A stretch of 64,000 nt of DNA, from sequence record LR756502.1. The stretch is one strand, 5' to 3'. Positions 930 to 63,208 of the stretch are shown here, piece after piece. Position numbers and translations under genes: made by a program. Position 1 is the stretch's first letter. Each line of letters begins with the position of its first letter. Under the pieces are notes generated by a model. That model had not been told where the DNA came from. It saw nothing but the letters and a program-made list of their open reading frames with translations, and did not search any database.

Positions 930-1087
930 ATGAGAACAATTAACAAACATAAACATTTTAGTAAATTGAATAAGTGGTTTAGTAACCATCGATTCGAAGC
1001 TAAAGCGTTTTGCTAAATTGTTAATAAACATAAAGGCATAAACTTACTTGAACTCTCGAATTGAAAAATTCGAGAGTTTTTTATTTT
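930..1087 (+). promoter_or_regulatory. Attenuator 1: leader MRTINKHKHFSKLNKWFSNHRFEAKAFC (930-1016) + terminator (1051-1087)
   Basis: His x3, Phe x4, Trp, Lys x5; CGATTCGA (990-997) can pair with terminator arm TCGAATTG (1056-1063); followed by His/Phe/Trp/Lys tRNAs and trpS. Confidence 0.8.
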
Positions 1088-2976: not shown

Positions 2977-3108
2977 AAACCTATTTATGATGGTAGAATA
3001 GAAGAGCATGAATTATCTGAGTGTTGGAAGAAAAAGAATGGTAGATGGAATTTTGAATGCAAGTACTAAAAATCAGAAAAAACAGATTTTAGACTTAATA
3101 TATAAGTT

Positions 3109-3369
3109 ATGAAAAACGTATTTAATTTTGCAGACTTTGTTAACGAGGAACTAAAAAAACTCCCAACTACTTATAACTTCAAGAGTGAATCTGAAGATAA
3201 AAAACATGATAAACTAGCTTCTAAAAAGAAGGAAGGTCATATCTGGAAAAAGACTGTTAGTAAACACGGTAAAGAATCTAAGACTGAGAATTTTTCTTGT
3301 GAGTGTGGATATAAGAAGAAGGTTGAAAATGATGAGAATAAGAATGTTACAATTACTTATTCAAAATAA
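3109..3369 (+). CDS. Hypothetical protein with N-terminal tag variant (MKNVFNFADFVNEE)
   Basis: ORF behind TAATATATA. Confidence 0.6.
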   Translation: MKNVFNFADFVNEELKKLPTTYNFKSESEDKKHDKLASKKKEGHIWKKTVSKHGKESKTENFSCECGYKKKVENDENKNVTITYSK

Positions 3370-3393
3370 TTAGGATAAAATAAAAACAATTAG

Positions 3394-3419: not shown

Positions 3420-3555
3420 ATGAAAACAACTATTAAAAATACAAGTTCACGTAGTCGCTCGAGTAAATCGGGTGAGGTTCGACTGTATTCATAATAGTTA
3501 GTATAAACATATTGTGTAAACCCTCGAACTTAACCGTTTGAGGGTTTTTTGTTTT
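3420..3555 (+). promoter_or_regulatory. Attenuator 2: leader MKTTIKNTSSRSRSSKSGEVRLYS (3420-3494) + terminator (3518-3555)
   Basis: Ser x7, Arg x3; GGTTCGA (3476-3482) pairs with TCGAACT (3524-3530); followed by Arg/Ser tRNAs. Confidence 0.8.
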
Positions 3556-4225: not shown

Positions 4226-4528
4226 ATGGAAAATATTGTAATAGGCATATGTCCTATTTGTGAAAGAGAAATGTGGAAAGATAAGTTTGTCAATAGACAT
4301 CACTTTCTTCCAAAATCGAAAGGTGGGAGAGAAACAGAGTGGCTTCATAAAATTTGTCATAGGAAAATTCATTCTATTTTTACAAACACAGAGTTAGCAA
4401 AAGAGTATAATAACCCGGAGGTTGTAAGGGCTCATCCAGAGATTGATAGATTTATTAAATGGATATCTAAAAAGGATCCAGATTTCTATGATGGAAATAC
4501 AACACATAATAAAAAAGGAAGACTATGA
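4226..4528 (+). CDS. HNH endonuclease family protein
   Basis: CPIC..NRHHFLPKSKGG..LHKICHRKIH. Confidence 0.8.
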   Translation: MENIVIGICPICEREMWKDKFVNRHHFLPKSKGGRETEWLHKICHRKIHSIFTNTELAKEYNNPEVVRAHPEIDRFIKWISKKDPDFYDGNTTHNKKGRL

Positions 4529-5259: not shown

Positions 5260-5595
5260 ATGAGTATTAAAAAATTTGAAAATTTTGAAGATGAATTTGA
5301 TGGAGAAGGAGTTGATAAAAGTGAGATTACTATGAAGGTTGCTGATACATCTACTTCACAAGAAGAATGGCAACAATATATGGCTCAGGATGGAGTTACA
5401 CTTCTTGTCTCAGCTTGGTATACAAATGCACAATATATGGTTGATTCTGAATTGTCTTTTATTTATCCAGAGTTGGAAGAAATAGAAGGATTGTATGACC
5501 TACAAGAAGGGTGTATGGAATATTCAGGACCCTTAACTGCCCAACAAATGGTTGATGAATTAATTAGATTAGGATTTAATGCGGTAATTGAATAA
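5260..5595 (+). CDS. Acidic hypothetical protein with N-terminal tag (MSIKKFENFE)
   Basis: ORF track; shared N-terminal motif. Confidence 0.6.
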   Translation: MSIKKFENFEDEFDGEGVDKSEITMKVADTSTSQEEWQQYMAQDGVTLLVSAWYTNAQYMVDSELSFIYPELEEIEGLYDLQEGCMEYSGPLTAQQMVDELIRLGFNAVIE

Positions 5596-5657
5596 TTATC
5601 CGTATATTTGTAAAACAGAAATTAAACTATTTAATAATATAATATATAATAATCGAA

Positions 5658-5765
5658 ATGAAAACTTTGCACACATATAAAAACGTGATTGACTGGATGT
5701 AAATATCCCGGCTACATAATTATATGTATTCCCAGTCAATAAAAATTGACTGGGATTTTTATTTT
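5658..5765 (+). promoter_or_regulatory. Attenuator 3: leader MKTLHTYKNVIDWM (5658-5702) + terminator (5729-5765)
   Basis: ATTGACTGG (5688-5696) is the exact complement of terminator arm CCAGTCAAT (5732-5740); operon contains RNA ligases and HisRS core. Confidence 0.65.
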
Positions 5766-5789
5766 AAAAAAATATAAAAATGTAAAGTT

Positions 5790-5987
5790 ATGAAAACTAA
5801 AGATATAGCTTGGTATGACCAGAAGTTGGAGAGTATCAAGAAAAGAAAAAGAAAGGTCTACCTTATTGATGATTCTAAAACTAGAAAGAGAATTAAGGCA
5901 GATCTTAAAAGAGAACAGCGTGGTGCTAAGCGAAGCGTTCGTAACTCTCTAAAAGAGTGGATTAAAAAAGAAATTAATACAGATTAA
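5790..5987 (+). CDS. Small very basic hypothetical protein
   Basis: Lys/Arg-rich 65 aa ORF. Confidence 0.6.
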   Translation: MKTKDIAWYDQKLESIKKRKRKVYLIDDSKTRKRIKADLKREQRGAKRSVRNSLKEWIKKEINTD

Positions 5988-5988
5988 G

Positions 5989-6186
5989 ATGGCAACACAT
6001 ACAAATACACTAACCTCACATCATGGTGAGAGTAGAACATCTAGAGCAGATAAAATGTCTGGTTGGATATCAGAATATAAAAGAATATTTGGTAAATCGG
6101 GAACATCGATGAAAACTGCCAAGACAATAAGTAATAGGAAAAGAAGAATGTTCTTAAAGAACAAAAAAAATTGGACAAAATTATGA
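5989..6186 (+). CDS. Small basic hypothetical protein
   Basis: 65 aa ORF, overlaps next gene. Confidence 0.55.
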   Translation: MATHTNTLTSHHGESRTSRADKMSGWISEYKRIFGKSGTSMKTAKTISNRKRRMFLKNKKNWTKL

Positions 6187-6836
6187 AATCATACCCGAGT
6201 ATAGACTATTTTGATAAAGGACTGTTTGGTGATACTGTTTGGGTATTCGACAAATTGGATGGATCAAATCTTAGAATGGAGTGGAACCGTAAGAGAGGGT
6301 GGTATAAATTTGGAACAAAGTCTGTAATGATTGATGTTAGTAATCCAGATTTTGGAGAAGCTATTCCTATATTTATGGAGAAATATTCCGATGATTTAGA
6401 GAGAGTATTTAAGAAAGAATATTCCAATGTTGAAAGCATTGTTGTTTTCTGTGAGTTTGTTGGAGACAACTCATTCGCTGGTCAGCATCTTGCTTCAGAT
6501 AAGAAGGATGTAGTTCTTTTTGATGTTAATCTTTATAAGAAAGGATTTATACATCCAAAAGATTTCCTCGATAACTTCGGACATCTCCATATACCCAAGT
6601 TGGTATATAAAGGAGAATATAATGACGACCTTATCAAAGATGTTAGAGATAATATCTGGGGTCTAAAAGAAGGTGTAATATGTAAAGGAGTTAGAAAAAC
6701 AAAAGGTGACCACATAGTCTGGATGACTAAGATTAAAACCATCGAATGGTTAAATAAAGTAAAAGAAAAATATGGAGAGAAGGCTCTCCTTGAAGAATTA
6801 AACAATAATAAAAAACTATTAAATTATGGAAATTAA
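6171..6836 (+). CDS. RNA ligase-like nucleotidyltransferase (Rnl2-type core)
   Basis: Motif I KLDGSN, CEFVG, LFDV, EGVICK, KIK. Confidence 0.75.
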   Translation: MDKIMKSYPSIDYFDKGLFGDTVWVFDKLDGSNLRMEWNRKRGWYKFGTKSVMIDVSNPDFGEAIPIFMEKYSDDLERVFKKEYSNVESIVVFCEFVGDNSFAGQHLASDKKDVVLFDVNLYKKGFIHPKDFLDNFGHLHIPKLVYKGEYNDDLIKDVRDNIWGLKEGVICKGVRKTKGDHIVWMTKIKTIEWLNKVKEKYGEKALLEELNNNKKLLNYGN

Positions 6837-7458
6837 ATTAGAATCAACGTATAAAGGAACTCGAATATTATTCGCTGAATCAGCTAAAAGAAAAAGAGAT
6901 ATATTAAATAAGATGATTGAAGTTCTTGAGTCCTATGGGTATCAGGAAATTATGATTCCTATTATTCAAAAACAAGAAACATTCCAATCAAAGGTGGGTG
7001 CTGAAAATCAAAACATGATGTTTAACTTCAAAGATAGAGGTGATCGTGATTTATGTTTATCCCCAGAGTATACCGCAATCGTTCAACAACTTGCTAAAGA
7101 GAAATTCAAATTCACAAACAATGTGAAGATGTTTTATATCGGTGAGTGTTTTAGAGGAGAAAATACACAAGCTGGAAGATGGAGACAATTTACTCAGTTT
7201 GGTGTTGAGATTATAAACCCAACAAAGGACTATTCTGATGAGATGGTTGAAATTGCTGGAAAACTAATTGAGTTAGTTACAAAAAATTATGAGACAAACC
7301 TAGATGCAACTCGTGGACTTGACTACTATAAAGGTGGTAAAGGATTTGAAATAGCTTGTCCAGAATTAGGTTCATCAAAGCAAGTTTGTGGCGGTGGTAC
7401 TTATGAAGGTGGTTTGGGATTCGCAGTGGGTGTTGATAGACTACTATTATGCAAATAA
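6826..7458 (+). CDS. hisS: Histidyl-tRNA synthetase catalytic core only (210 aa)
   Basis: LSPEYTA, motif 2 FRGENTQAGRWRQFTQFGVE, GLDYY, motif 3 GFAVGVDRL; no anticodon-binding domain. Confidence 0.8.
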   Translation: MEIKLESTYKGTRILFAESAKRKRDILNKMIEVLESYGYQEIMIPIIQKQETFQSKVGAENQNMMFNFKDRGDRDLCLSPEYTAIVQQLAKEKFKFTNNVKMFYIGECFRGENTQAGRWRQFTQFGVEIINPTKDYSDEMVEIAGKLIELVTKNYETNLDATRGLDYYKGGKGFEIACPELGSSKQVCGGGTYEGGLGFAVGVDRLLLCK

Positions 7459-15932: not shown

Positions 15933-16487
15933 CTATATATGTTTCCATCTTCTTCTATTTACTATATTCGCTACTGTTTGCTTTGCTATTCCATATTTCT
16001 TTACCAGCTTTCCATATGAGTAACCGCTTTCTCTTAATGATCTTAGCTCTCTTACTTGATCTTCTGTAAGCTTTGATTTTCCGTTTTTTTCTCCCGGACA
16101 TTTTTGTATACCATTTCCTTCTTTTATTCTCTTGTACATTATCTCTCTTAGCTTAGCCTTGGTTTCCTCGCTGTGTTTTTTACCACTCCAACAATCTCCC
16201 CCTTCTCCACCATTTGTTCCATTATAAAGTTTAAATCCCCAAGATTTTATTTGTGATATCCAGAATTTTTCCCAATAGTCCTCTTCTCCTTTATTGACTA
16301 TATCTATAATGGAGATAGTGATATCTTCTCCATTGGATAGTATTTTATTTATTTTTTTTTCTTTATGTGTCCTTTTTAGTATGCACTCCTTTTTATGTTT
16401 ATTTAGTCTTGTAGATAGGCTTATTGTCTTACCTACATAGAATAGGGTGTTATTGTGCTCAAGTGTGTATATGTAATATTTTTCCAT
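15933..16487 (-). CDS. GIY-YIG homing endonuclease with NUMOD3 and C-terminal HTH
   Basis: YYIYTL..FYVGKT, GKKHSEETKAKL, GEKNGKSKLTEDQV. Confidence 0.85.
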   Translation of the reverse strand: MEKYYIYTLEHNNTLFYVGKTISLSTRLNKHKKECILKRTHKEKKINKILSNGEDITISIIDIVNKGEEDYWEKFWISQIKSWGFKLYNGTNGGEGGDCWSGKKHSEETKAKLREIMYKRIKEGNGIQKCPGEKNGKSKLTEDQVRELRSLRESGYSYGKLVKKYGIAKQTVANIVNRRRWKHI

Positions 16488-16947: not shown

Positions 16948-17100
16948 ATGAATAGATTTACTAACATAGAAACAATAGGGTACACAGGGTATGAGGGCGC
17001 GTATAGCGAACTTTTAGTCAGACCTTTGTCTATGTTATAATGTAAAATATTATACAATTTGATAAAATCCAGTCTGATTAATTTCAGACTGGATTTTTTG
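16948..17100 (+). promoter_or_regulatory. Attenuator 4: leader MNRFTNIETIGYTGYEGAYSELLVRPLSML (16948-17040) + terminator (17064-17100)
   Basis: Tyr x3, Glu x3; TAGTCAGAC (17015-17023) pairs with GTCTGATTA (17072-17080); followed by Glu/Tyr tRNAs. Confidence 0.8.
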
Positions 17101-17160: not shown

Positions 17161-17245
17161 GCTACGGTATGCAAATTGGACTAAGCGCCCAGACTTTCAA
17201 TCTGGTCACGAAAGTGGATTGCGGGTTCGAATCCCGTCCGTAGTA
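17161..17245 (+). tRNA. tRNA with Glu(UUC) anticodon, Leu-like body and variable arm
   Basis: CCAGA-CTTTCAA-TCTGG; V-arm CAC-GAAA-GTG. Confidence 0.8.
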
Positions 17246-17259
17246 CAAATATAAAGCAC

Positions 17260-17343
17260 GGGAGTGCGCCAACGTTGGAGAGTTGGGCTAGTCTGTAAAA
17301 CTAGTGGCTTATGCCTGAGTGAGTTCGATTCTCACCACTCCCA
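17260..17343 (+). tRNA. tRNA-Tyr(GUA)
   Basis: CTAGT-CTGTAAA-ACTAG, V-arm. Confidence 0.85.
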
Positions 17344-17354
17344 CAAAGACAGAA

Positions 17355-17426
17355 GGTCCTGTCGACTAAAGGTTAGGTCAACACCCTTTCAAGGTGTAGA
17401 TACGGGTTCGATCCCCGTCAGGATCA
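17355..17426 (+). tRNA. tRNA-Glu(UUC)
   Basis: ACACC-CTTTCAA-GGTGT. Confidence 0.9.
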
Positions 17427-17431
17427 CAAAT

Positions 17432-17513
17432 GGGTCGTTAGCAAAGCGGCAAAGTCGAGGGACTGTAAATCCCTTCCCTTCGGGGTTCGTAGGTTCGAGT
17501 CCTACACGGCCCA
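17432..17513 (+). tRNA. tRNA-Tyr(GUA)
   Basis: AGGGA-CTGTAAA-TCCCT, V-arm. Confidence 0.9.
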
Positions 17514-17522
17514 CTAAAATAT

Positions 17523-17596: not shown

Positions 17597-17655
17597 CAAA
17601 AAATAAAAAGAGAGATTAAACTTTTAATATATACAATTATATAAAACAAGAAACT

Positions 17656-17797
17656 ATGAAAAATTTACATAACATATCAGTTGGAGTTATAGCGATAGGC
17701 GCGGGGAGCGTTTGTCTGTGGCTGAACTATGTTTCGTAAATAGTAAAATATTTATCATAAACTAACCCAGTCACAAAATGACTGGGTTTTTTATTTA
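17656..17797 (+). promoter_or_regulatory. Attenuator 5: leader MKNLHNISVGVIAIGAGSVCLWLNYVS (17656-17739) + terminator (17764-17797)
   Basis: Ile ATA x3, Gly x3, Ala x2; TGTGGCTG (17717-17724) pairs with CAGTCACA (17768-17775); followed by Ile(UAU)/Gly/Ala tRNAs. Confidence 0.8.
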
Positions 17798-17798
17798 T

Positions 17799-17871
17799 GG
17801 TCTATTAGCTCAATGGTCAGAGCAGGACGCTTATATCGTCAAGGTTACAGGTTCGAGTCCTGTATAGACTA
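17799..17871 (+). tRNA. tRNA-Ile(UAU)
   Basis: GACG-CTTATAT-CGTC. Confidence 0.85.
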
Positions 17872-17925
17872 CAAATGTCGGGTAAGGGAACTCACGGTGG
17901 GAGCACCGCCCCCTCGGCTCCAATA

Positions 17926-17947
17926 ATGAAGGAAAACATTAAACCCG
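17926..17947 (+). repeat. 22-bp direct repeat ATGAAGGAAAACATTAAACCCG (second copy 18801-18822)
   Basis: Exact copies bracket two tRNA-Gly and the GIY-YIG gene. Confidence 0.85.
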
Positions 17948-17966
17948 TCCAGCCAGACGTAAAATC

Positions 17967-18037
17967 GCAAAATGTAGCTTAGTGATAAAGCACCTCACTT
18001 CCAATGAGGGGATGGAGTTTGATTCTCACATTTTGCT
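17967..18037 (+). tRNA. tRNA-Gly(UCC)
   Basis: CCTCA-CTTCCAA-TGAGG. Confidence 0.8.
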
Positions 18038-18042
18038 CAATA

Positions 18043-18115
18043 GCAGTAGTGGTGTTAATGGTTAGCACAGGAGATTTCCACTCTTCTGGTGTCGGTTCGA
18101 ATCCGGTCTACTGCA
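18043..18115 (+). tRNA. tRNA-Gly(UCC)
   Basis: GGAGA-TTTCCAC-TCTTC. Confidence 0.85.
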
Positions 18116-18177
18116 CAAAAGAAAAAATTGTGGGTGATGGGACTTCAACTATTTTAATATATAAAAATAAAATAGTT

Positions 18178-18804
18178 ATGTATCATACAATTTATAAAAT
18201 AACAAATATACTAAATGATAAAATTTATATAGGCAAACACTCAACAGAAAATTTAGACGATAGTTATATGGGGTCTGGTTCTTATATTAGAAGATCCATA
18301 AAAAAATATGGAGTTGAGAATTTTAAGAAAGAGATTTTGTTTATATTTGATAGCTCAGAAGAGGCATATAAAAAAGAAATAGAAATTGTTAATGAAGACT
18401 TTGTATTAAGAACAGACACTTATAATATTATAACTGGAGGTGATTCATTTGAGGCAATTAACTCTAATGAAGAACTTAGAAAGGAAAAAAATAAAAGGGC
18501 AGCAGTATCAATGAATAGAATTAATTGGACAAATCCTGAGTTTATAAAAAGAAACCATGATAGAATGTCTGAACAAAATAAGAGATTATTTAATGAGGGA
18601 ATACTTAAAGCACCTGATTGGACAGGTAGAAAACACAAGGATGAAACCAAAATTAAACAAAGTATTTCAGCTAAAAAAAGAATTAGAGAGAAAAATAAAC
18701 ATTGTTGGGTATATCATTACGTAGATGGTAATAAAAAAATAAAAATATCCGAAATAGATACATATCTAATCAATGGATGGATAAAGGGAAGAATAATGAA
18801 ATGA
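18178..18804 (+). CDS. GIY-YIG (Seg-like) homing endonuclease inside the tRNA array
   Basis: IYKITN..KIYIGKHST..YMGSG; NUMOD3-like GRKHKDETK; true start ATG 18178. Confidence 0.9.
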   Translation: MYHTIYKITNILNDKIYIGKHSTENLDDSYMGSGSYIRRSIKKYGVENFKKEILFIFDSSEEAYKKEIEIVNEDFVLRTDTYNIITGGDSFEAINSNEELRKEKNKRAAVSMNRINWTNPEFIKRNHDRMSEQNKRLFNEGILKAPDWTGRKHKDETKIKQSISAKKRIREKNKHCWVYHYVDGNKKIKISEIDTYLINGWIKGRIMK

Positions 18805-18821
18805 AGGAAAACATTAAACCC

Positions 18822-18893
18822 GCGAAAGTAGCACAGCGGTAGTGCGATACCTTGCCAAGGTATAGGTCGTGGGTTCAATCCCCATCTTTCGCT
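18822..18893 (+). tRNA. tRNA-Gly(GCC)
   Basis: ATACC-TTGCCAA-GGTAT. Confidence 0.9.
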
Positions 18894-18898
18894 CAAAA

Positions 18899-18970
18899 GC
18901 AGTATTGGTGTTTAATGGTAGCATATCTGGTTCCATCCAGTAGGCGTCGGTTCGAATCCGGCACACTGCT
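18899..18970 (+). tRNA. tRNA-Gly-like with 6-nt anticodon loop
   Basis: CTGG-TTCCAT-CCAG; Gly-type GCAGTAT acceptor, U73. Confidence 0.6.
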
Positions 18971-18978
18971 CAAATTAT

Positions 18979-19058
18979 TGGCGAGTACCAGTGCATCCTT
19001 ATAAGATGCATACCTGTAGCGGTCGTTGAAAACGTGGGTTCAAATCCCACCTCGCCAA
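18979..19058 (+). tRNA. D-armless tRNA-like RNA, Ile(UAU) anticodon
   Basis: TGGCGAG/CTCGCCA; TGCATC-CTTATAA-GATGCA only 6 nt after the acceptor; long variable region; normal T-arm. Confidence 0.7.
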
Positions 19059-19068
19059 CAAAATTAAT

Positions 19069-19143
19069 GGGGGCGCATGTTCCAAGGCTTAGGCGAATGA
19101 CACTTGCAATGTCGTTGGGGGATTTCGATTATCCTCGCTTCCA
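19069..19143 (+). tRNA. tRNA-Ala(UGC)
   Basis: G3:U70, GACA-CTTGCAA-TGTC. Confidence 0.85.
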
Positions 19144-19152
19144 CTAAAATAT

Positions 19153-19226
19153 GGGGCTATGGTGACAACTGGCTAACACGCGGCATTTGCAATGCTGAGA
19201 TCTCGGATCATTCCCGGGTAGCTCCA
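19153..19226 (+). tRNA. tRNA-Ala(UGC)
   Basis: G3:U70, CGGCA-TTTGCAA-TGCTG. Confidence 0.85.
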
Positions 19227-19544
19227 CAAAAAATAATAAACACTATGAAAGTAGATAAAAAGAGGAGAAAGTTACAAGAAAGACTTGAGTTTTTGGAGAA
19301 TGAAATGATTGTAAATTTAACAAAGAAAACTTCTAATACGAAGGAAATCGATGTTCCTACTTACAACAGAAAGATCCAAGAACTTAGAGTAGAACTTTCA
19401 AAACTAAAATAAGAAAGAAAGAGGAAAACAGGCTATGGACGCAGGTCAGTAAAACAAAAAATTGAAAGAATCGAAAGTAGAAAAATCGAAATTGGTTCTA
19501 AACACAGAAGAAAATTAAAAAGATATTCGGATAATTTTAATCGA

Positions 19545-29344: not shown

Positions 29345-29548
29345 ATGGAACCGGAATTAGAAGAATTAATTATAAGAGAAGAAATGATTGAAGAAATGAA
29401 AAAACTTTTTACAAAGGGACAAACAAACCCAAGTGCAATAACCTCTTTGATGTATATGAAAGGATTCAAGGGTAGATTTATGGAGATTAGAAAAATTGCA
29501 GAATACCAGTATAAGGTTTATACTATGGAAATAAAAAGAAAACAGTAA
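29345..29548 (+). CDS. Hypothetical protein, first gene after attenuator 6
   Basis: ORF track. Confidence 0.55.
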   Translation: MEPELEELIIREEMIEEMKKLFTKGQTNPSAITSLMYMKGFKGRFMEIRKIAEYQYKVYTMEIKRKQ

Positions 29549-29724: not shown

Positions 29725-29803
29725 CGGTACATACCGAGCCACACTGATAATGTGGATATTCGTAGCGGTGTTGTAAACGTGGGTTCAAATCCCTCTGTAC
29801 CGA
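29725..29803 (+). tRNA. D-armless tRNA-like RNA, Ile(GAU) anticodon
   Basis: CGGTACA/TGTACCG; CCACA-CTGATAA-TGTGG; variable region CGTAGCGGTGTTGTAAAC. Confidence 0.7.
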
Positions 29804-29808
29804 CAAAT

Positions 29809-29887
29809 GCCCTTGTAGTCGAGTCAGTTTTCTAAACTGTTAATCGTAATGGAAAGGAAGATGCAGGTTCGAATCCTGTCTAGGGTA
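29809..29887 (+). tRNA. D-armless tRNA-like RNA, Arg(UCU) anticodon
   Basis: CAGT-TTTCTAA-ACTG; variable region with CGTAATGG; normal T-arm. Confidence 0.6.
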
Positions 29888-30959: not shown

Positions 30960-31394
30960 ATGGTAAAATATGACAAAGAGGAATTTATAAGTGTTTGTGA
31001 GGACAGTCCTACAATGGCTAGAGCGGCTTCTAAATTAGGTATTCATTTTAATACCTTTAGAAGGATAGCTGTTAAGTTGAATTGTTATAGAACAAATCAG
31101 TCCGGAAAGGGTTTAACTAAAAAGAGCGATAGAGGAACACCTTTGTCAGAAATTCTTGAGGGAAAACATCCACAATTTCAATCATTTAAATTGAAAAATA
31201 AATTGATAAAGGAAGGAATAAAAGAGAATAGATGTGAGGTTTGTAATATAAGTGAATGGAATGGGAAAGTGATAAATTGTGAACTAGACCATATAGATGG
31301 TAATAGCAGAAATCACAGATTGGAAAATCTAAGAATACTGTGTCCAAATTGTCACTCACAAACTGATACATTTAGAGCAAAGAATATAAAATAA
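30960..31394 (+). CDS. HNH endonuclease inside the tRNA array
   Basis: CEVC..ELDHIDGNSRNHRLENLRILCPNCH. Confidence 0.9.
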   Translation: MVKYDKEEFISVCEDSPTMARAASKLGIHFNTFRRIAVKLNCYRTNQSGKGLTKKSDRGTPLSEILEGKHPQFQSFKLKNKLIKEGIKENRCEVCNISEWNGKVINCELDHIDGNSRNHRLENLRILCPNCHSQTDTFRAKNIK

Positions 31395-46384: not shown

Positions 46385-46410
46385 ATCTACTAATTTTACT
46401 TATATTTAAA

Positions 46411-49957: not shown

Positions 49958-50119
49958 ATGAAAAACTTAATCTTAAATATCGCAATTCAAGTACAACGTC
50001 AAGTTGTTGTCGATCAGGATCAACCGGATACGACTGAGGCTAATTGCGATTTTATAAGAGAGTAAAATAATACTTGAATTATACAAACCCAGTTAGTCTA
50101 TGATTAACTGGGTTTTTTT
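49958..50119 (+). promoter_or_regulatory. Attenuator 7: leader MKNLILNIAIQVQRQVVVDQDQPDTTEANCDL (49958-50056) + terminator (50085-50119)
   Basis: Asp x4, Gln x5, Pro; GGCTAATTG (50038-50046) pairs with CAGTTAGTC (50090-50098); followed by Pro/Asp tRNAs. Confidence 0.75.
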
Positions 50120-50752: not shown

Positions 50753-50822
50753 GGTGCTGTCGTCTAATGATAGGATGCTCCCATTGGAGGGAGTGATGTA
50801 GGTTTGATTCCTAACTGTACCG
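50753..50822 (+). pseudogene. tRNA-like gene with 6-nt anticodon loop (ATTGGA)
   Basis: CTCCC-ATTGGA-GGGAG; D- and T-arms present. Confidence 0.5.
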
Positions 50823-50833
50823 CAAAAATAATA

Positions 50834-50936: not shown

Positions 50937-51052
50937 ATGACAACTTCATTTCAGCAACAACAGCAACAACAAATTAATCGAACAGATTGATGTGGAATGA
51001 TATTGTTTAAATATTACACCCGTTAGTCTGAGGAGATTAACGGGTTTTTTAT
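50937..51052 (+). promoter_or_regulatory. Attenuator 8: poly-Gln leader MTTSFQQQQQQQINRTD (50937-50990) + terminator (51018-51052)
   Basis: 7 consecutive CAG/CAA codons; CAGATTGATG (50983-50992) pairs with CGTTAGTCTG (51021-51030); followed by 4 tRNA-Gln and glnS. Confidence 0.9.
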
Positions 51053-51130: not shown

Positions 51131-51214
51131 TGCGGAATCCCATAATGGCATTGGTCCTGACTTTGAATCAGGTGGAATGAAAATTCTGTGTAGGTTCGAA
51201 TCCTACTTCCGCAT
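51131..51214 (+). tRNA. tRNA-Gln(UUG) with long variable arm
   Basis: CCTGA-CTTTGAA-TCAGG; V-arm GGAAT-GAAA-ATTCT. Confidence 0.85.
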
Positions 51215-51219
51215 CAAAT

Positions 51220-51397: not shown

Positions 51398-52999
51398 ATG
51401 AATTTCATTGAAGATAAAATAATAGAGAAAAATAACTTAGATAAACTAAAGTTAAGATTTCCACCAGAAAACTCAGGTTATATCCACCTGGGTCATGCCA
51501 AATCTATCTGTCTTAATTTTGGACTAGCATTAAAATATAACAGACCTTGTAATTTAAGGTTTGATGATACTAACCCATCCAATGAATCTGACGATTTCAC
51601 AAGATCAATAATTGAAGATATCAAATGGTTAGGATTCACACCATCTGAGACTCTATATACCTCTGATTATTTCTCTGAACTATACAACTATGCAATCATC
51701 CTAATTAGAAAAGGATTAGCTTACGTTGATGATTCAACATCAGAAGAAATTGCCTTATTAAAAGGAACACCAACATCTGTTGGTAAAGATTCTCCATATA
51801 AATCAAGAACTATCGAAGAGAACTTAGACTTATTCAATAGAATGAAATTAGGTGAATTCACAGAGGGTTCTAAAACACTTAGAGCAAACATTGATATGAC
51901 TTCATCTAATATGATATTGAGAGATCCTATCATATATAGAATGATTAATAAGACACACCACAATGTTGGTGATGCTTGGAAGATATATCCAATGTATGAT
52001 TTTGCACATCCATTGTCTGACTATATTGAAGGTATAACTGACTCTTTGTGTACTATGGAATTTGAGGTACATTTGCCTTTATATATGTGGGTATTGAAAA
52101 ATTGTGATTTAAAAAATTCTTTACCGGAAGAAACTGAGTTTGCTCGATTGAACATTGATTTTACAATAATGAGTAAGAGAAAACTAAAGAGATTAGTTGA
52201 AGAAGGATTTGTTTCTGGATGGGATGATCCAAGAATGCCTACTATCTCTGGATTAAGAAGAAGAGGATTTACACCAAAAAGTATTAGAGATTTTTGTGAA
52301 GAAATTTCTGTAACAAGAAGTAACTCTATAATTAGTCATAAAGTATTAGAAGAGTGTTTAAGAACAGATTTGAATAAGTCAGCTAATAGAATGATGGGTG
52401 TTATTGACCCTGTTAAATTGACTATTACTAATTGGGTTGGTGGTACTGAATGGGTTGAAATAGAGAATAACCCAGAAGATCCAAACGCTGGAACTAGATT
52501 GGTTCCTTTTACTGGAGTGTTGTGGATTGAGATAGAAGACTTTAGATTAGAAGCTGATAAGAAATTTCACAGATTAAAGTTGAATGAAGAAGTTAGATTA
52601 AAAGGTGGATACGTTGTTAAAGCAACCGATGTTGTTATGAATGGTGATGTTATATCTGAGATAAAATGTACATTCGATCCTAACTCTAAATCTGGAATGG
52701 TTTTAGATAGAAAGGTAAAAGGAGTAATTCACTGGGTATCTGTTGAACACGCTGTTAACTTAGATGTTAATGAGTATGATACTTTATTTACTGAATCTAA
52801 TCCTGATGATTTAGAAGATTTTACAACTTGTATTAATCCTAATTCTTTAATTGTGAATACAAAGGCTATGTTTGAACCACATATAATGGCACTTGAAGTT
52901 GGTGTTCCGGTTCAAATGATGAGAAAAGGATATTATTGTCTTGACAAGGATGGTGTTTTTAACAAGACCGTTTCATTGAAAGAAGGTTGGAAAGGATAA
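51398..52999 (+). CDS. glnS: Glutaminyl-tRNA synthetase
   Basis: RFPPENSGYIHLGHAK, LRFDDTNP, YPMYDFAH, SKRKL, GWDDPRMPTI.GLRRRG, VKGVIHWVS. Confidence 0.95.
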   Translation: MNFIEDKIIEKNNLDKLKLRFPPENSGYIHLGHAKSICLNFGLALKYNRPCNLRFDDTNPSNESDDFTRSIIEDIKWLGFTPSETLYTSDYFSELYNYAIILIRKGLAYVDDSTSEEIALLKGTPTSVGKDSPYKSRTIEENLDLFNRMKLGEFTEGSKTLRANIDMTSSNMILRDPIIYRMINKTHHNVGDAWKIYPMYDFAHPLSDYIEGITDSLCTMEFEVHLPLYMWVLKNCDLKNSLPEETEFARLNIDFTIMSKRKLKRLVEEGFVSGWDDPRMPTISGLRRRGFTPKSIRDFCEEISVTRSNSIISHKVLEECLRTDLNKSANRMMGVIDPVKLTITNWVGGTEWVEIENNPEDPNAGTRLVPFTGVLWIEIEDFRLEADKKFHRLKLNEEVRLKGGYVVKATDVVMNGDVISEIKCTFDPNSKSGMVLDRKVKGVIHWVSVEHAVNLDVNEYDTLFTESNPDDLEDFTTCINPNSLIVNTKAMFEPHIMALEVGVPVQMMRKGYYCLDKDGVFNKTVSLKEGWKG

Positions 53000-54213: not shown

Positions 54214-54338
54214 ATGAGAAAGATAATTAAATTAAAAGATGATCGTTATTTATGGACTGACTGCCTCGCAGATTAGTGATAGATAACTATTACCTATAAT
54301 CTTCAAACCCAGTCAGAAATGACTGGGTTTTTTATTTT
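54214..54338 (+). promoter_or_regulatory. Attenuator 9: leader MRKIIKLKDDRYLWTDCLAD (54214-54276) + terminator (54305-54338)
   Basis: Asp x4; CTGACTG (54257-54263) pairs with CAGTCAG (54310-54316); directly before aspS. Confidence 0.8.
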
Positions 54339-54362: not shown

Positions 54363-55640
54363 ATGAAAAGAATAAACGTAAATCAATTAGAAAACTTTAT
54401 CGGTCAAACTGTACTGGTAAAAGGATGGGTATCTCAATTTAGAGAACTTAAAAAAATGTCTTTCCTTATTTTAAGAGAAAGAACTGGATATTGTCAAATC
54501 ATTATCCCAAAAGAAATTAGTGAATCACTTTCACCTGAGTCTGTTGTCGAGGTTATCGGAACAGTTAAAGTAGAAAGTCAATCTCGTTATGGTGGTTATG
54601 AAATTGTAGCTGAGTCAGTTAAAGTAACATCAGTTGCCCAACTACTTCCTTTTCCTATAAACAGAGAAGAAGGTATTCCCGCTTTCAACACATTAAACAT
54701 ATTTAGACCTTTAACATTAAGAAAGGAAAAAGAAAGATGTATATTCAAAATTCAATCTGAGATTATCTGGGCTTATAGAGAATATTTAAGAAGTCAAGGG
54801 TTTACTGAAATACAATCTACTAAAATGTCTGCAGCTGGATTAGAAGGTGGATCAGAAATGTTTGAGATAGAATACTTTGGTCAAAAAATGTATTTAACTC
54901 AATCACCACAGTTTTATAAACAAATGATGGTTGGTGTTTATGAAAGAGTATTTGAAGTTGGTAAAGTTTACCGTGCTGAAGGTTCTAACTCCAACAAACA
55001 CTTAACCGAGTTTGTTGGTTTTGAATTCGAAATGGGATTCATTGAATCTGTTGAAGAAGTTATGCAAATGGAAGAAAATGTATTTGAGTATATCTTTACT
55101 CACTTAACATCTGTTTGTGAGAAAGAATTGGGATATTTAGAAGTAGAACTTAAATTTAATCCTATTCCAAGAGTAACTTACGCTGAGGTGATTGAGATTA
55201 TAAAAAATGAATATGGAATTACTTATGAGAAAGTAGGATTAAATACTGAAGCTGAAAGATTAATTTCTGAGTATATCTTTAGTAAGACTGGTTCTGAATT
55301 TGTTTTCATTACAAAATATCCACTTTCAGAAAGACCGTTCTATGCAATGCCTTCTGTTGAAGAAGGATGTTCAGAGACATTTGAATTGTTATATAAGGGA
55401 ATGGAGATTACTTCTGGTGGTCAACGTATTCATAACTATGAAGAATTAGTAAAATCAATTGAGTCTAAGGGATTAAACCCAGAAGCTTTTGAAAGTTACT
55501 TAATGGCTTTTAAGTTTGGAATGCCAACACATGGTGGTATGGGTATTGGATTAGAAAGAGTTGTTAAACAGATGTTAAATTTATCATCAGCTGAAGAAGC
55601 TTCTTTAATTCCAAGAACAAAAGAGAAGTGGATACACTAA
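54363..55640 (+). CDS. aspS: Aspartyl-tRNA synthetase, short archaeal/non-discriminating type
   Basis: OB-fold N-terminus, LTQSPQFYKQ, YRAE..HLTEF, EITSGGQRIH, PTHGGMGIGLER; no GAD insertion. AsnRS not fully excluded. Confidence 0.85.
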   Translation: MKRINVNQLENFIGQTVLVKGWVSQFRELKKMSFLILRERTGYCQIIIPKEISESLSPESVVEVIGTVKVESQSRYGGYEIVAESVKVTSVAQLLPFPINREEGIPAFNTLNIFRPLTLRKEKERCIFKIQSEIIWAYREYLRSQGFTEIQSTKMSAAGLEGGSEMFEIEYFGQKMYLTQSPQFYKQMMVGVYERVFEVGKVYRAEGSNSNKHLTEFVGFEFEMGFIESVEEVMQMEENVFEYIFTHLTSVCEKELGYLEVELKFNPIPRVTYAEVIEIIKNEYGITYEKVGLNTEAERLISEYIFSKTGSEFVFITKYPLSERPFYAMPSVEEGCSETFELLYKGMEITSGGQRIHNYEELVKSIESKGLNPEAFESYLMAFKFGMPTHGGMGIGLERVVKQMLNLSSAEEASLIPRTKEKWIH

Positions 55641-62159: not shown

Positions 62160-63098
62160 AAAAAGTCTACCCCTTCGTCCTCGATGGGTAATATCCAAAT
62201 AAAGACGCAAATAGGATGTTTCAGACTTTGTACCAAGCTTCGACTTCGGTTGTTGTGTAGGTAGGGCGGCTTATAGTCCTTAAATAAACCTCGAAAGGGG
62301 GATAAAGTGAGTATCATTGCTAAATGATATTTGCGGTTTGAACTGAAAGGTTTGAGCTCGAGTAAGCAAGCGAAATACCACAAAATCTGTAGTAATGAGG
62401 GTAACTCCGTAGTGAAACGATTTTGTGATTGGGTGAACGTAGGTCACTTGATTGACTTCGGAAGAAGAACAGGAATAATTCGTAGGAATTTTGTGAGAAA
62501 TATCGGCTTAACCGGCTAGTATGATTGCGAGTTCTAATTCAAGAGATGTCTTAAAGTTGAAAGACAATTCTTCTACCAGGTGGTGCTGTTGAAGAACATT
62601 AATCTGACTACCAAGTTGGTAGGTATCATCGCAAGGTGGTATCGTGATGAAGAAATCTTAAAGAATTGTGATGGAGGCATCACACAGAGTAGTTCAGTAT
62701 TTTGTCTGTCAAAAACGGATGAAGCTGAGAGGAGACCACTACTTTGACTTAATCTACAAGCACAAAAAATTTACTTATGATGTAAAAACTATAACTAAAT
62801 CAAAAGTGTTTCCTAGTTATCAATGAAAATTGACTACTTAGCCGTGAGTTGTTCACGGTCACATTAAGCCCGAAAGGCGGATGTGATTTCAGAGAAAAGC
62901 TTATAGAGGGTCGAACCTCTAATCAGTTCGCAAGACTGAATAAGTGGAGTAAATGGAGAATAGTTGATAACTTAAGGAGTGGTTGGTCTAACTAACCGTC
63001 ATTGACAAGTTACTACTCAAAAGGTAGTGGATAGATTTGGGAATAAATAATCCAAACAGAGGCTTGTTGTTTTAGGATGTAATCTCAGTCCTTTTTTT
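62160..63098 (+). ncRNA. Large (~0.9 kb) structured ncRNA, GOLLD/ROOL-class candidate
   Basis: No credible ORF, higher GC, many hairpins (CCTC-GAAA-GGGG, GAG-GGTAA-CTC, TATCATC-GCAA-GGTGGTA, GTGATG/CATCAC, CCGTGA/TCACGG, AGAGG/CCTCT), flanked by tRNAs, ends in U-tract. Family not verified. Confidence 0.7.
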
Positions 63099-63100
63099 AT

Positions 63101-63173
63101 GGCCTTTTCGTCTAGTGGTTAGGACGAATATCTTTTCAGATATTAAACAGCGGTTCGAATCCGTTAAAGGCTA
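63101..63173 (+). tRNA. tRNA-Glu-type gene with 8-nt anticodon loop
   Basis: GGCCTTT/AAAGGCT; AATAT-CTTTTCAG-ATATT. Confidence 0.75.
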
Positions 63174-63177
63174 CAAC

Positions 63178-63208
63178 AACCCACCGATCTGGTGGGTTTT
63201 TTTATTTT
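63178..63208 (+). terminator. Intrinsic terminator
   Basis: AACCCACC-GATCT-GGTGGGTT followed by T-tract. Confidence 0.85.

Follow-up and report, generated by a model that had tools for sequence, protein, structure and literature searches.

The 642-kb genome of LR756502, a huge Bacteroidota phage, raises the question of what a short ORF is doing directly in front of a set of tRNA genes. The original prediction, made for a 64,000-nt stretch of this genome (record LR756502.1; the window), was that the ORF at 17656 is a regulatory leader written in the codons of the tRNAs behind it, with Ile encoded only by ATA, Gly by GGA, GGC and GGG, and Ala by GCG. All of these codons were confirmed: Ile7, Ile12 and Ile14 are ATA (3/3), Gly10, Gly15 and Gly17 are GGA, GGC and GGG, and Ala13 and Ala16 are both GCG. 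These are the candidate sensor codons. We consider it likely, as an inference from sequence alone, that the ORF, designated L5, serves in ribosome-mediated (leader-peptide) attenuation and so controls transcription into the Ile(UAU)/Gly/Ala tRNA sub-cluster, and that it is one of a phage-wide set. The features of the locus are as follows.

17620-17655 (+), AT-rich region 5' of the ORF, with the motif CTTTTAATATATA at 17621-17633
17656-17739 (+), L5 leader ORF MKNLHNISVGVIAIGAGSVCLWLNYVS; ATG start, 27 codons, stop at 17737
17663-17741 (+), predicted 1:2 hairpin, in which the 5' half of the ORF (sensor codons) pairs with its 3' half
17716-17725 (+), region 2, predicted antiterminator strand CUGUGGCUGA; codons 21-24, 12 nt before the stop
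17764-17795 (+), intrinsic terminator (regions 3 and 4), AACCCAGUCA-CAAAA-UGACUGGGUU, then a U-run
17799-17872 (+), tRNA-Ile(UAU), the first tRNA after L5
17967-18038 and 18043-18116 (+), two tRNA-Gly(UCC) (ARAGORN and Rfam)
18169-18804 (+), GIY-YIG (Seg-like) homing-endonuclease ORF, inserted in the cluster
18822-18894 (+), tRNA-Gly(GCC) (ARAGORN and Rfam)
18899-18971 (+), Gly(UCC)-like tRNA with a 6-nt anticodon loop
18980-19058 (+), odd tRNA-like gene (TAT anticodon) that lacks a normal D arm and has an extra region of 23 nt
19069-19144 (+), divergent tRNA-Ala(UGC) with an enlarged D region
19153-19227 (+), tRNA-Ala(UGC) (ARAGORN and Rfam)

The first downstream tRNA is indeed an Ile tRNA with the UAU anticodon (ARAGORN; Rfam 66.8 bits), as predicted, and the rest of the predicted cluster, four Gly and two Ala(UGC) tRNAs, held in part. 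Three Gly tRNAs are solid; the fourth, at 18899-18971, is reported by ARAGORN only at a lowered threshold and only with a "(cc)" anticodon, and its Rfam score of 21.7 bits is below the gathering score. The Ala tRNA at 19153 is solid, and that at 19069-19144 was found by ARAGORN at a lowered threshold only and not by Rfam, with a clearly similar copy kept in relatives. ARAGORN predictions with long introns at lowered thresholds were left out as spurious. Two elements had been missed, the terminator hairpin at 17764-17788 with its U-run and the odd TAT gene at 18980-19058. The UAU anticodon is not unique to this cluster, since three tRNAs in the window have a TAT anticodon, and another tRNA-Ile(UAU) falls in the regulon of the sibling leader L6. 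The endonuclease ORF, bordered by the direct repeat ATGAAGGAAAACATTAAACCCG at 17926 and 18801, has weak Pfam matches to PF19835 and PF01541, and Blast matches it to Seg-like endonucleases of T4-like and Vibrio phages. By eye, both tRNA-Ala(UGC) genes carry G3:U70.

L5 has what an attenuator requires: an upstream ORF on the same strand, cognate codons (weak on their own), an intervening terminator and a predicted, mutually exclusive antiterminator. The terminator hairpin is strong, with a 10-bp, GC-containing stem; it ends 10 nt before tRNA-Ile(UAU), and its U-run ends about 4 nt before it. There is thus no space for a promoter between them, and the tRNAs could be made only by read-through of the terminator.

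Taken by itself, the codon match of L5 is near chance, and it rises above chance only alongside the sibling units and homologues. Ile, Gly and Ala make up 8 of its 26 residues, against 4.9 expected (P=0.096). ATA accounts for 44% of the Ile codons in the LR756502 genome, which gives P=0.086 for three out of three, and four Val codons in L5 have no matching tRNA downstream. The case therefore rests on the rest of the set. The window contains nine units, L5 included, each consisting of a short ATG-initiated ORF followed by a strong terminator: seven of them precede tRNA sub-clusters, and the other two precede AspRS and an RNA-ligase/HisRS-like operon. The eight siblings are listed here.

930-1079 (+), L1 MRTINKHKHFSKLNKWFSNHRFEAKAFC and terminator; before His, Phe, His, Phe, Trp and three Lys tRNAs, then a TrpRS-like fragment
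3420-3547 (+), L2 MKTTIKNTSSRSRSSKSGEVRLYS and terminator; before Arg(ACG), four Ser tRNAs and Arg(UCG)
5658-5757 (+), L3 MKTLHTYKNVIDWM and terminator; before an operon with two RNA ligases and a HisRS-like fragment
16948-17098 (+), L4 MNRFTNIETIGYTGYEGAYSELLVRPLSML and terminator; before Glu, Tyr, Glu, Tyr and Glu tRNAs, directly 5' of L5
29158-29321 (+), L6 MKTMNLNMNLNTLTVVNNTLCIRPCEGFDLFNDL and terminator; before Asn, Leu, Val, Ile(GAU), Cys, Thr, Met and Arg(UCU/CCU) tRNAs
49958-50115 (+), L7 MKNLILNIAIQVQRQVVVDQDQPDTTEANCDFIRE and terminator; before Pro and Asp tRNAs
50937-51045 (+), L8 MTTSFQQQQQQQINRTD and terminator; the leader has QQQQQQQ and precedes four tRNA-Gln and GlnRS (51398-52999)
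54214-54331 (+), L9 MRKIIKLKDDRYLWTDCLAD and terminator; before a non-discriminating AspRS (54363-55640)

The gap to the tRNA sub-cluster is 8-20 nt in five of the seven tRNA-linked units, and the stop codons of the units lie 24-30 nt before the terminator. The sibling leaders are not hydrophobic, as the Gln run of L8 and the Ser/Arg-rich L2 illustrate.

Several leaders match the tRNAs behind them far better than L5 does. Gln makes up 7 of the 16 residues of L8 (P=2e-8), Ser and Arg 10 of 23 in L2 (P=1e-4), Phe, His and Lys 12 of 27 in L1 (P=2e-4), and cognate residues 21 of 33 in L6 (P=0.0025); in the window, the match of L7 to Pro and Asp is weak (P=0.3). When the seven tRNA-linked units were scored together, the real leader-cluster pairing had the top score among all 5,040 permutations, and six of the seven leaders ranked their own cluster first. 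An automatic unit finder run on the window and 11 related loci returned 30 units, with a summed z of 120.9 versus 20.6±12.1 in shuffles, none of which (0/20,000) scored as high. No tRNAs and no convincing units were found in 100 kb of the same genome on the flanks of the window.

Nine phage sequences, namely the window, LR745206 and seven contigs from IMG/VR, have a Gln run in frame with an ATG before their Gln tRNAs, and the arrangement of a Gln-rich leader (4-7 Gln), terminator and tRNA-Gln 5' of GlnRS is present in eight more huge-phage contigs. In LR745206, a leader with IIII and a terminator precede an IleRS-like ORF. At 65 chromosomal glnS loci of Flavobacteriia/Bacteroidota, we found neither a Gln-run leader nor a terminator; simple copying of the element from a host glnS was rejected on this ground.

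The L5 comparison set comprised the window, LR745206, IMG/VR contig 3300032288_004964 and L257, with 27 codons each, and L258, with 21; the ORF length is thus kept in four of the five. Ile, Gly and Ala contribute 8/26, 12/26, 10/26, 11/26 and 11/20 residues, and the enrichment that is marginal in the window reaches P values of 0.0003 to 0.015 in its homologues. The residue changes among them mostly exchange I, G and A for one another. A tRNA-Ile(UAU) comes first behind the leader except in L258, where a gene similar to the odd UAU tRNA at 18980-19058 takes this place; Gly and Ala tRNAs follow in the other four (L258 was viewed only to its first tRNA). Four homologues share the pattern MKNL.NIS...GAG...WL.Y. 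In L258, a different reading frame runs through the conserved GTGGCTGAG block and meets a stop codon there, which ends the ORF at 21 codons, so the block is conserved at the level of RNA and not of peptide. A counter-case is L454, a 281-kb relative, where Ile(UAU)-Gly-Ala lies directly behind another tRNA, in a comparison that included no sequence further upstream. Two loose IUPAC scans (GGCGCGGG-N13-TGGCTG and a gapped version), dominated by GC-rich chance matches, yielded no new L5 homologue. Around weak blast matches in LR756504 and LR756501, the 50 kb inspected in each had no tRNA cluster and no L5 homologue detectable at the DNA level.

Whether the match extends to individual codons is less secure, and the strict codon-level claim of the original prediction has only moderate support. 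In its favor are contrasts between isoacceptors. ATA accounts for 15 of the 20 Ile codons in L5-type leaders versus none of eight in L6-type leaders, where tRNA-Ile(GAU) is the first Ile tRNA behind the leader (P=0.002 by Fisher's test on the first six). The Arg codons of L2-type leaders, which precede tRNA-Arg(ACG/UCG), are all CGN (5/5; background 13%; CGT, CGC and CGA in L2 itself), and those of L6-type leaders, which precede tRNA-Arg(UCU/CCU), are all AGA (4/4). GCG makes up 11 of the 14 Ala codons (background 5%). Against it stand the commonness of ATA and a possible structural bias. In L5, a conserved GC hairpin has the Gly/Ala codons GGC GCG GGG as its stem, so that their bias to rare G/C-ending codons may be structural. 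The GGCGCG..AGCG hairpin is common to L4 and L5 in the window and is absent from the L4 homologue of LR745206, which lowers but does not remove the suspicion that these Gly/Ala codons are purely structural. Loss of ATA conservation had been named as one outcome that would refute the prediction. The conservation was partly kept, with ATC and ATT also present in the homologues. The homologues are related, and counts over them are not independent.

The alternative pairings that an attenuator would need can be found in the sequence, as can the ORFs, terminators, spacing, codon and amino-acid matches, and conservation; the folds themselves are predictions. The L5 leader has a minimum free energy of -42.4 kcal/mol (z=-5.1 against 200 shuffles), and an inner GC hairpin at 17694-17716 lies within the 1:2 hairpin. 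Region 2 has two predicted alternative partners, region 1 and, within the 5' arm of the terminator, CAGUCACA. The second duplex, GUGGCUG with CAGUCAC (prediction only), has an energy of -12.5 kcal/mol versus -8.4±2.1 in shuffles (P=0.048), and the 2:3 helix is the predicted fold in the sequences designated W, R and V when the 3' arm is absent or a ribosome is set on codons 12-17. The terminator stem is identical in all five L5 homologues, R and Y each having one additional loop base. GTGGCTGA is kept in four of the five, with TTGGCTGA in L004. RNAalifold retains the 1:2 hairpin in the consensus of the five, with only two compensatory pairs overall; the 2:3 helix is just 7-8 bp, nearly invariant and without covariation. 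Five sequences are too few for covariation to prove structure.

The same architecture recurs across the set. In all nine window units, the 3' end of the ORF is able to pair with the 5' arm of the terminator, at P<0.05 in eight (1,000 dinucleotide shuffles; Fisher's combined P=5e-10). In all nine, the antiterminator strand either overlaps the stop codon or ends 0-17 nt short of it, which places the strand inside the footprint of a terminating ribosome.

How these parts would work together is inferred, as are translation of the ORF, stalling, regulated read-through (including its response to charged-tRNA supply) and biological purpose. Transcription would enter from a host-type promoter upstream or by read-through from the Glu/Tyr unit, and a ribosome would then begin on the 27-codon ORF. 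If Ile(AUA), Gly and Ala codons were decoded fast, the ribosome would reach the stop, and region 2 would be covered or re-paired with region 1. With region 2 unavailable, the hairpin at 17764-17788 would form and RNA polymerase would terminate just before tRNA-Ile. If a charged cognate tRNA were scarce, the ribosome would stall on codons 7-17 and occupy region 1; region 2 would then pair with CAGUCACA, the terminator would be blocked and the tRNA genes would be transcribed. The extra demand might come from the phage's own mRNAs, which are rich in ATA and would load the pool, or from a depletion of host tRNAs. The net effect would be negative feedback on decoding capacity, with tRNA sets supplied when codon demand exceeds supply, and GlnRS or AspRS would be supplied likewise through sibling units.

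The motif CTTTTAATATATA may be a degenerate Bacteroidota -7-type promoter or plain 5' UTR, and L004, L257 and L258 have a consensus-like TAnnTTTG (TATATATTTGTA) at the equivalent position. When examined as a phage promoter, CTTTTAATATATA was not over-represented in the window (20 matches versus 14.4 expected), so we make no promoter claim. A consensus host promoter just 5' of L5 is absent in the window and LR745206 copies. In the window, read-through from the upstream L4 unit is a possible alternative source of transcription.

Four other explanations were weighed. The one that survives best, though we regard it as unlikely, is a real translation-coupled switch that is not codon-specific and responds to general translational capacity or infection stage, or that has inverted logic, efficient translation giving read-through. 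In its favor, the window's L5 and L7 show only a weak match to their clusters, and the GC-rich codons may have a structural role. How transcription and translation are coupled in Bacteroidota has been little studied, which also leaves it room. Against it, leader compositions match their own clusters, to the isoacceptor level for Ile and Arg. Moreover, the terminating ribosome would cover the antiterminator strand and not the hairpin, which it cannot itself block because the stops lie 24-30 nt upstream.

We consider it very unlikely that the units are punctuation only, that is, ordinary terminators, insulators or elements for tRNA-precursor processing or stability, with the ORFs as chance frames in AT-rich spacers. 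By a rough estimate, a 27-codon open frame has about a 12% chance per frame at this base composition; similar AAACCC...GGGTTT terminators close ordinary genes (e.g. at 46408 and 43595), and L5's own match is near chance. This account is opposed by the rank of the real pairing among the 5,040, by the failure of all 20,000 shuffles to reach the value seen across relatives, and by the Gln runs before Gln tRNAs in nine phage sequences. It is also opposed by the conserved length and frame of the ORFs, by the complementarity of their 3' ends to their own terminators and by the lack of convincing units in 100 kb of flanking DNA.

Less probable still is an RNA-only sensor, a T-box-like element or protein-binding hairpin for which translation is not needed. 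L5 conservation is largely at the nucleotide level and CCCAGTCA-like arms are common to the terminators of several units, as this explanation would have it. Against it, every unit starts with ATG and has its cognate codons in frame; the Gln run shares its frame with the ATG in the window, in LR745206 and in a further seven contigs. No T-box or other Rfam cis-regulatory family reached its gathering score in the window, and none reached E<=1 in 17600-19300 apart from Plastid-ycf2, a weak minus-strand match on the tRNA-Ile gene (23.3 bits against a cut-off of 65.7). The same Rfam searches gave no match to leader families (His_leader, Trp_leader, Leu_leader, Thr_leader and others).

Finally, that L5 encodes a functional small hydrophobic peptide, such as a membrane micropeptide, with incidental tRNA adjacency, is suggested by the resemblance of ISVGVIAIGAGSVCLWL to a short transmembrane segment with a GxG motif and by the pattern kept in four homologues, but is very unlikely given the out-of-frame GTGGCTGAG and truncated ORF of L258 (so that peptide sequence is not conserved independently of RNA structure), the hydrophilic sibling leaders, the conservation also of synonymous sites that pair in the 1:2 hairpin, and the exchange of I, G and A at the variable positions of L5.

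The attenuator reading has well-known counterparts. Like trpL, hisL, pheL, ilvL/ivbL, thrL and leuL of Enterobacteria, the phage units combine a short ORF rich in regulatory codons, alternative 1:2, 2:3 and 3:4 hairpins, and an intrinsic terminator directly before the regulated genes; the run of seven identical Gln codons in L8 recalls hisL, and the mixed Ile/Gly/Ala of L5 the multivalent ilv leaders. Unlike the Enterobacteria attenuators, with which they share neither sequence nor Rfam membership, they would regulate tRNA genes rather than biosynthetic enzymes, are phage-borne in a Bacteroidota host lineage, and form a series of at least nine modules along tRNA arrays. In pheM-pheST of E. coli, a leader peptide controls an aminoacyl-tRNA synthetase. 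There, as proposed here, the target of a cognate-codon leader is a gene for decoding rather than for amino-acid synthesis; direct analogues are L8 (Gln, GlnRS), L9 (Asp, AspRS) and, in LR745206, the leader with IIII that precedes IleRS. The phage units differ from pheM-pheST in that the first genes behind the attenuator are usually tRNAs themselves and the closest host-type glnS genes have no such leader. In T-box riboswitches, too, the state of a specific tRNA controls tRNA-related genes through a terminator/antiterminator choice, as we propose here, but these bind uncharged tRNA directly without a need for translation, whereas the phage units have an in-frame ORF and no T-box signature. The setting resembles the arrays of T4, T5, KVP40-like, Lak and other huge phages, with clustered tRNAs, interspersed homing endonucleases and codon use unlike that of the host. 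In the literature searched, we found no report of leader ORFs or attenuators before phage tRNA arrays, and the paper publishing the LR756502 genome mentions none.

A bolder reading, which we favor by a narrow margin, is that huge Bacteroidota phages carry a modular, codon-by-codon "decoding-capacity homeostat." Each tRNA sub-cluster, GlnRS, AspRS, IleRS and the RNA-ligase (tRNA-repair) operon would have its own leader, spelled in precisely the codons served by those tRNAs or enzymes, which would let the phage sense limiting or destroyed host tRNAs (e.g. through anticodon nucleases) and switch on only the matching replacement or repair genes.

Phage tRNA genes are usually taken either to offset codon bias as a fixed supplement or to act as decoys against defences that target tRNAs. 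To our knowledge, the control of their expression is essentially unexplained. If the proposal is true, tRNA genes would here be seen under leader-peptide attenuation for the first time, and one of the oldest bacterial regulatory mechanisms would, if the units work as predicted, gain a new class of target. It would explain the grouping of tRNAs by amino acid in these genomes. The leaders would provide a testable read-out of the codons that the phage "worries about," as well as compact, orthogonal sensors with which synthetic biology could follow codon-specific translation capacity. Why phages carry tRNAs would then become open to experiment, with each leader sequence stating the condition under which its set of tRNAs is wanted.

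The window (bases 372001-436000 of LR756502.1; G+C 32.7%, no N) comes from the 642,428-bp genome of an uncultured "huge phage", one of the four largest genomes in Al-Shayeb et al. 2020 (PMC7162821), where it belongs to the Mahaphage clade with predicted Bacteroidetes hosts. Its tRNAs, about 55 and all on the + strand, are every tRNA found in 164 kb of the genome; none was found in the 50 kb on either side. A terminator scan placed a strong hairpin and U-run ahead of every window tRNA sub-cluster. For five of the seven sub-clusters, only 8-20 nt separate the end of the hairpin from the first tRNA, too little to fit a promoter. A short ATG ORF lies upstream of each such terminator, and the leader-terminator units are listed here.

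Leader-terminator units of the window
L1: leader MRTINKHKHFSKLNKWFSNHRFEAKAFC; then His, Phe, His, Phe, Trp and three Lys tRNAs, TrpRS-like fragment
L2: leader MKTTIKNTSSRSRSSKSGEVRLYS; then Arg(ACG), four Ser tRNAs, Arg(UCG)
L3 (5658-8431 with operon): leader MKTLHTYKNVIDWM; then two PF09414 RNA ligases, truncated HisRS-like gene
L4: leader MNRFTNIETIGYTGYEGAYSELLVRPLSML; then Glu and Tyr tRNAs
L5: leader MKNLHNISVGVIAIGAGSVCLWLNYVS; then Ile(UAU), Gly, Ala tRNAs
L6: leader MKTMNLNMNLNTLTVVNNTLCIRPCEGFDLFNDL; then Asn, Leu, Val, Ile(GAU), Cys, Thr, Met, Arg(UCU/CCU) tRNAs
L7: leader ...VVVDQDQPDTT...; then Pro and Asp tRNAs
L8: leader MTTSFQQQQQQQINRTD; then four tRNA-Gln genes and GlnRS
L9 (54214-55640 with AspRS): leader MRKIIKLKDDRYLWTDCLAD; then non-discriminating AspRS (NF003483, 469 bits)

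Several of these units have further features. The L9 leader has four Asp codons, its LR745206 homologue three Asp and three Asn. The L3 leader is conserved in LR745206 as MRALHTYKITIDLG. The tRNAs reading codons for His, Tyr, Asn, Asp and Lys are known targets of anticodon nucleases, and L3 with its terminator could, speculatively, switch on tRNA repair in response to damage. LR745206 (46899-47150 of its locus L002) also has a leader, MNFNTIIIIRYSIPWSIPIG (Ile codons ATA ATA ATA ATT), and terminator directly 5' of an IleRS-like ORF, a unit for which the window showed no counterpart. A 67-codon ORF (MEPELEELIIREEM...; about 29345-29548) separates the L6 terminator from the first tRNA-Asn, a tRNA that in relatives follows within about 20 nt. 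Truncated aaRS-like genes, all scoring under NCBIfam cut-offs, lie within or just 3' of a tRNA unit for the same amino acid: TrpRS-like (2257-2976, 239 aa), HisRS-like (6826-7458, 210 aa) and, in related locus L001, GlyRS-like (5457-6197, 246 aa).

Features of the L5 unit
17656-17739 (+): leader ORF, peptide MKNLHNISVGVIAIGAGSVCLWLNYVS
17764-17788 plus U-run: intrinsic terminator, between ORF and tRNA-Ile
17799: tRNA-Ile(UAU), solid call
17967 and 18043: two tRNA-Gly(UCC), solid calls
18822: tRNA-Gly(GCC), solid call
18899-18971: fourth Gly tRNA, 6-nt anticodon loop
18980-19058: odd tRNA-like gene, TAT anticodon, inside the cluster
19069: second tRNA-Ala(UGC), clearly similar copy kept in relatives
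19153: tRNA-Ala(UGC), solid call

The original prediction held: the ORF at 17656-17739 is present, uses only ATA for Ile (three codons), GGA/GGC/GGG for Gly and GCG for Ala (two codons), and is followed first by tRNA-Ile(UAU) and next by Gly and Ala tRNAs. Its count of four Gly and two Ala(UGC) tRNAs is solid for three Gly and one Ala; the fourth Gly scores below the Rfam threshold and the second Ala is divergent. The terminator and the odd tRNA-like gene at 18980 had been overlooked.

The arrays are unusual in other respects. The anticodon loop has only 6 nt in three tRNA genes (18899-18971, TTCCAT; 50753-50823, ATTGGA; 63101-63174, TTTTCA), for which ARAGORN gives two-base "anticodons"; the neighbours of each are normal tRNAs from the family that it matches (Gly; Gln or Pro; Glu or Lys). 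Other tRNA-like genes lack a normal D arm and have about 23 nt extra after the anticodon arm (18980-19058, 29725-29804, 29809-29887; in relatives, L003 about 2985-3140 and L258 about 3290-3370). Their anticodons are TAT, GAT and TCT, and they are kept across phages with compensatory anticodon-stem changes. A number of tRNAs for Lys, Glu, Tyr and Gln, classes normally having short variable arms, are unusually long at 82-89 nt (1661-1930, 17161-17514, 51131-51215). Homing-endonuclease-like ORFs (GIY-YIG, HNH) occur in and around the arrays (18169-18804, 15933-16487(-), 30960-31394, 4226-4528); 22 nt of inter-tRNA spacer, present as a direct repeat (17926-17947, 18801-18822), flank the GIY-YIG ORF at 18169-18804, in the L5 regulon. 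The stretch 62685-63174 holds a full-length GOLLD RNA (RF02032, 275 bits) and, directly after it, a tRNA with a 6-nt anticodon loop; a terminator (63175-63201) comes next.

Taken alone, L5 is not above chance. Against 40 long window ORFs (11,168 codons), in which 44% of Ile codons are ATA, three ATA of three has P=0.086; I, G and A make up 8 of 26 residues, with 4.9 expected (P=0.096). None of the downstream tRNAs matches its four Val codons. Across the seven tRNA units, the true leader-cluster assignment has the top summed z-score among all 5,040 permutations. Six of the seven leaders rank their own cluster first; L7, whose Gln codons fit the next cluster downstream, ranks its own third. An automatic finder (terminator stem ≥9 bp, tRNA ≤120 nt, longest ATG ORF of 10-60 codons with its end just upstream of the terminator) returned 30 units from the window and 11 related loci, with a summed z of 120.9 against 20.6±12.1, reached by none of 20,000 shuffles. 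This set includes homologues and is replication, not independence.

The predicted L5 fold (z-score -5.1) consists of a long hairpin joining the two ORF halves (regions 1:2), then the terminator (3:4). When the terminator 3' arm is left out or a ribosome occupies codons 12-17, the prediction changes to 2:3, the antiterminator, joining UGUGGCUG (codons 21-23) with CAGUCACA of the terminator 5' arm. In all nine units the final ORF codons mimic the 3' arm of their own terminator, the pairing reaching P<0.05 in eight (1,000 dinucleotide shuffles; Fisher combined P 5e-10), and the antiterminator strand either overlaps the stop codon or ends 0-17 nt short of it. Because the stop codon lies 24-30 nt ahead of the terminator, the ribosome cannot itself block the terminator. 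A terminating ribosome would mask the antiterminator strand, and one stalled further upstream would free it. Such geometry is of the classical trp type.

Five distinct L5 homologues, the window copy included, were compared.

L5 homologues: leader peptide and probability of I+G+A content
W (window): MKNLHNISVGVIAIGAGSVCLWLNYVS, P=0.096
R (LR745206): MKNLNNISIAVIGNGAGAIREWLSYGI, P=0.0013
V (IMG/VR 385-kb contig): MKNLHNISIAIIAGGAGSDCHWLSYVL, P=0.015
X (L257): MNSIINISTAIIAGGAGSERQWLSYVM, P=0.0046
Y (L258): MKQIHNISAKIGGGAGASVSG, P=0.0003

Substitutions mostly exchange I, G and A for one another, and the terminator stem is identical in 5/5 (R and Y with one extra loop base). In W, R, V and X, tRNA-Ile(UAU) comes first and Gly and Ala tRNAs come next; L258, covered to its first tRNA only, has the odd UAU tRNA in first place. 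The LR745206 cluster also holds a GlyRS-like fragment. A frame-shifting indel in L258 places the stop codon within the conserved GTGGCTGAG block, which is therefore conserved as RNA (region 2), not as Trp-Leu-Ser. RNAalifold recovered the 1:2 hairpin, an inner GC hairpin and the terminator with only two compensatory pairs, and thus there is no covariation proof of the structure.

At codon level, L5-type leaders use ATA for 15/20 Ile codons, with codon 7 invariant, and L6-type leaders, where the first Ile tRNA is GAU, use it for 0/8; the LR745206 IleRS leader mixes ATA and ATT. Arg is CGN in 5/5 codons of L2-type leaders, ahead of tRNA-Arg(ACG/UCG) (background 13%), and AGA in 4/4 of L6-type leaders, ahead of tRNA-Arg(UCU/CCU) (Fisher P=0.008). 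L5-type leaders use GCG for 11/14 Ala (background 5%) and GGT for 0/17 Gly (background 52%). Structure accounts for this G/C-ending bias just as well, because the same codons build the inner hairpin. The original matching of ATA codons to tRNA-Ile(UAU) is plausible: an ATA sensor is possible, with only moderate support from sequence, and is open to experimental test.

With GlnRS as anchor, ten IMG/VR loci were retrieved. Eight huge-phage contigs have a Gln-rich leader (with 4-7 Gln, as in MVNITINIQQQQQQQTLNKGSGIALS and MTTFTQQYQQQQIDREIDW), terminator and tRNA-Gln ahead of the GlnRS gene, and in seven contigs a Pro/Asp(/Gln) leader also precedes Asp/Pro(/Gln) tRNAs. The nearest cellular GlnRS genes are flavobacterial (51-54% identity). 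Among 65 such cellular loci not one shows a Gln run in a leader, or a terminator. Copying together with a host GlnRS gene is therefore rejected, and the element is taken as a phage-lineage feature.

We conclude that L5 is likely one member of a modular family of ribosome-mediated attenuators gating phage tRNA sub-clusters and aaRS genes, with translation, stalling and regulated read-through all inferred from sequence alone. The full-text literature searched holds no description of leader-peptide attenuation of tRNA genes or phage tRNA arrays, and the genome paper (PMC7162821) has no words starting "leader", "attenuat" or "terminator"; coverage was incomplete. The proposed mechanism is of the same kind as in trp, his and pheST, from which the family differs in target (tRNA genes), carrier (phage) and modular multiplicity; these three appear to be new, although a prior account is not excluded. 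Gating would follow the decoding speed of the cognate codons in each leader, and the outcome would be feedback control of decoding capacity.
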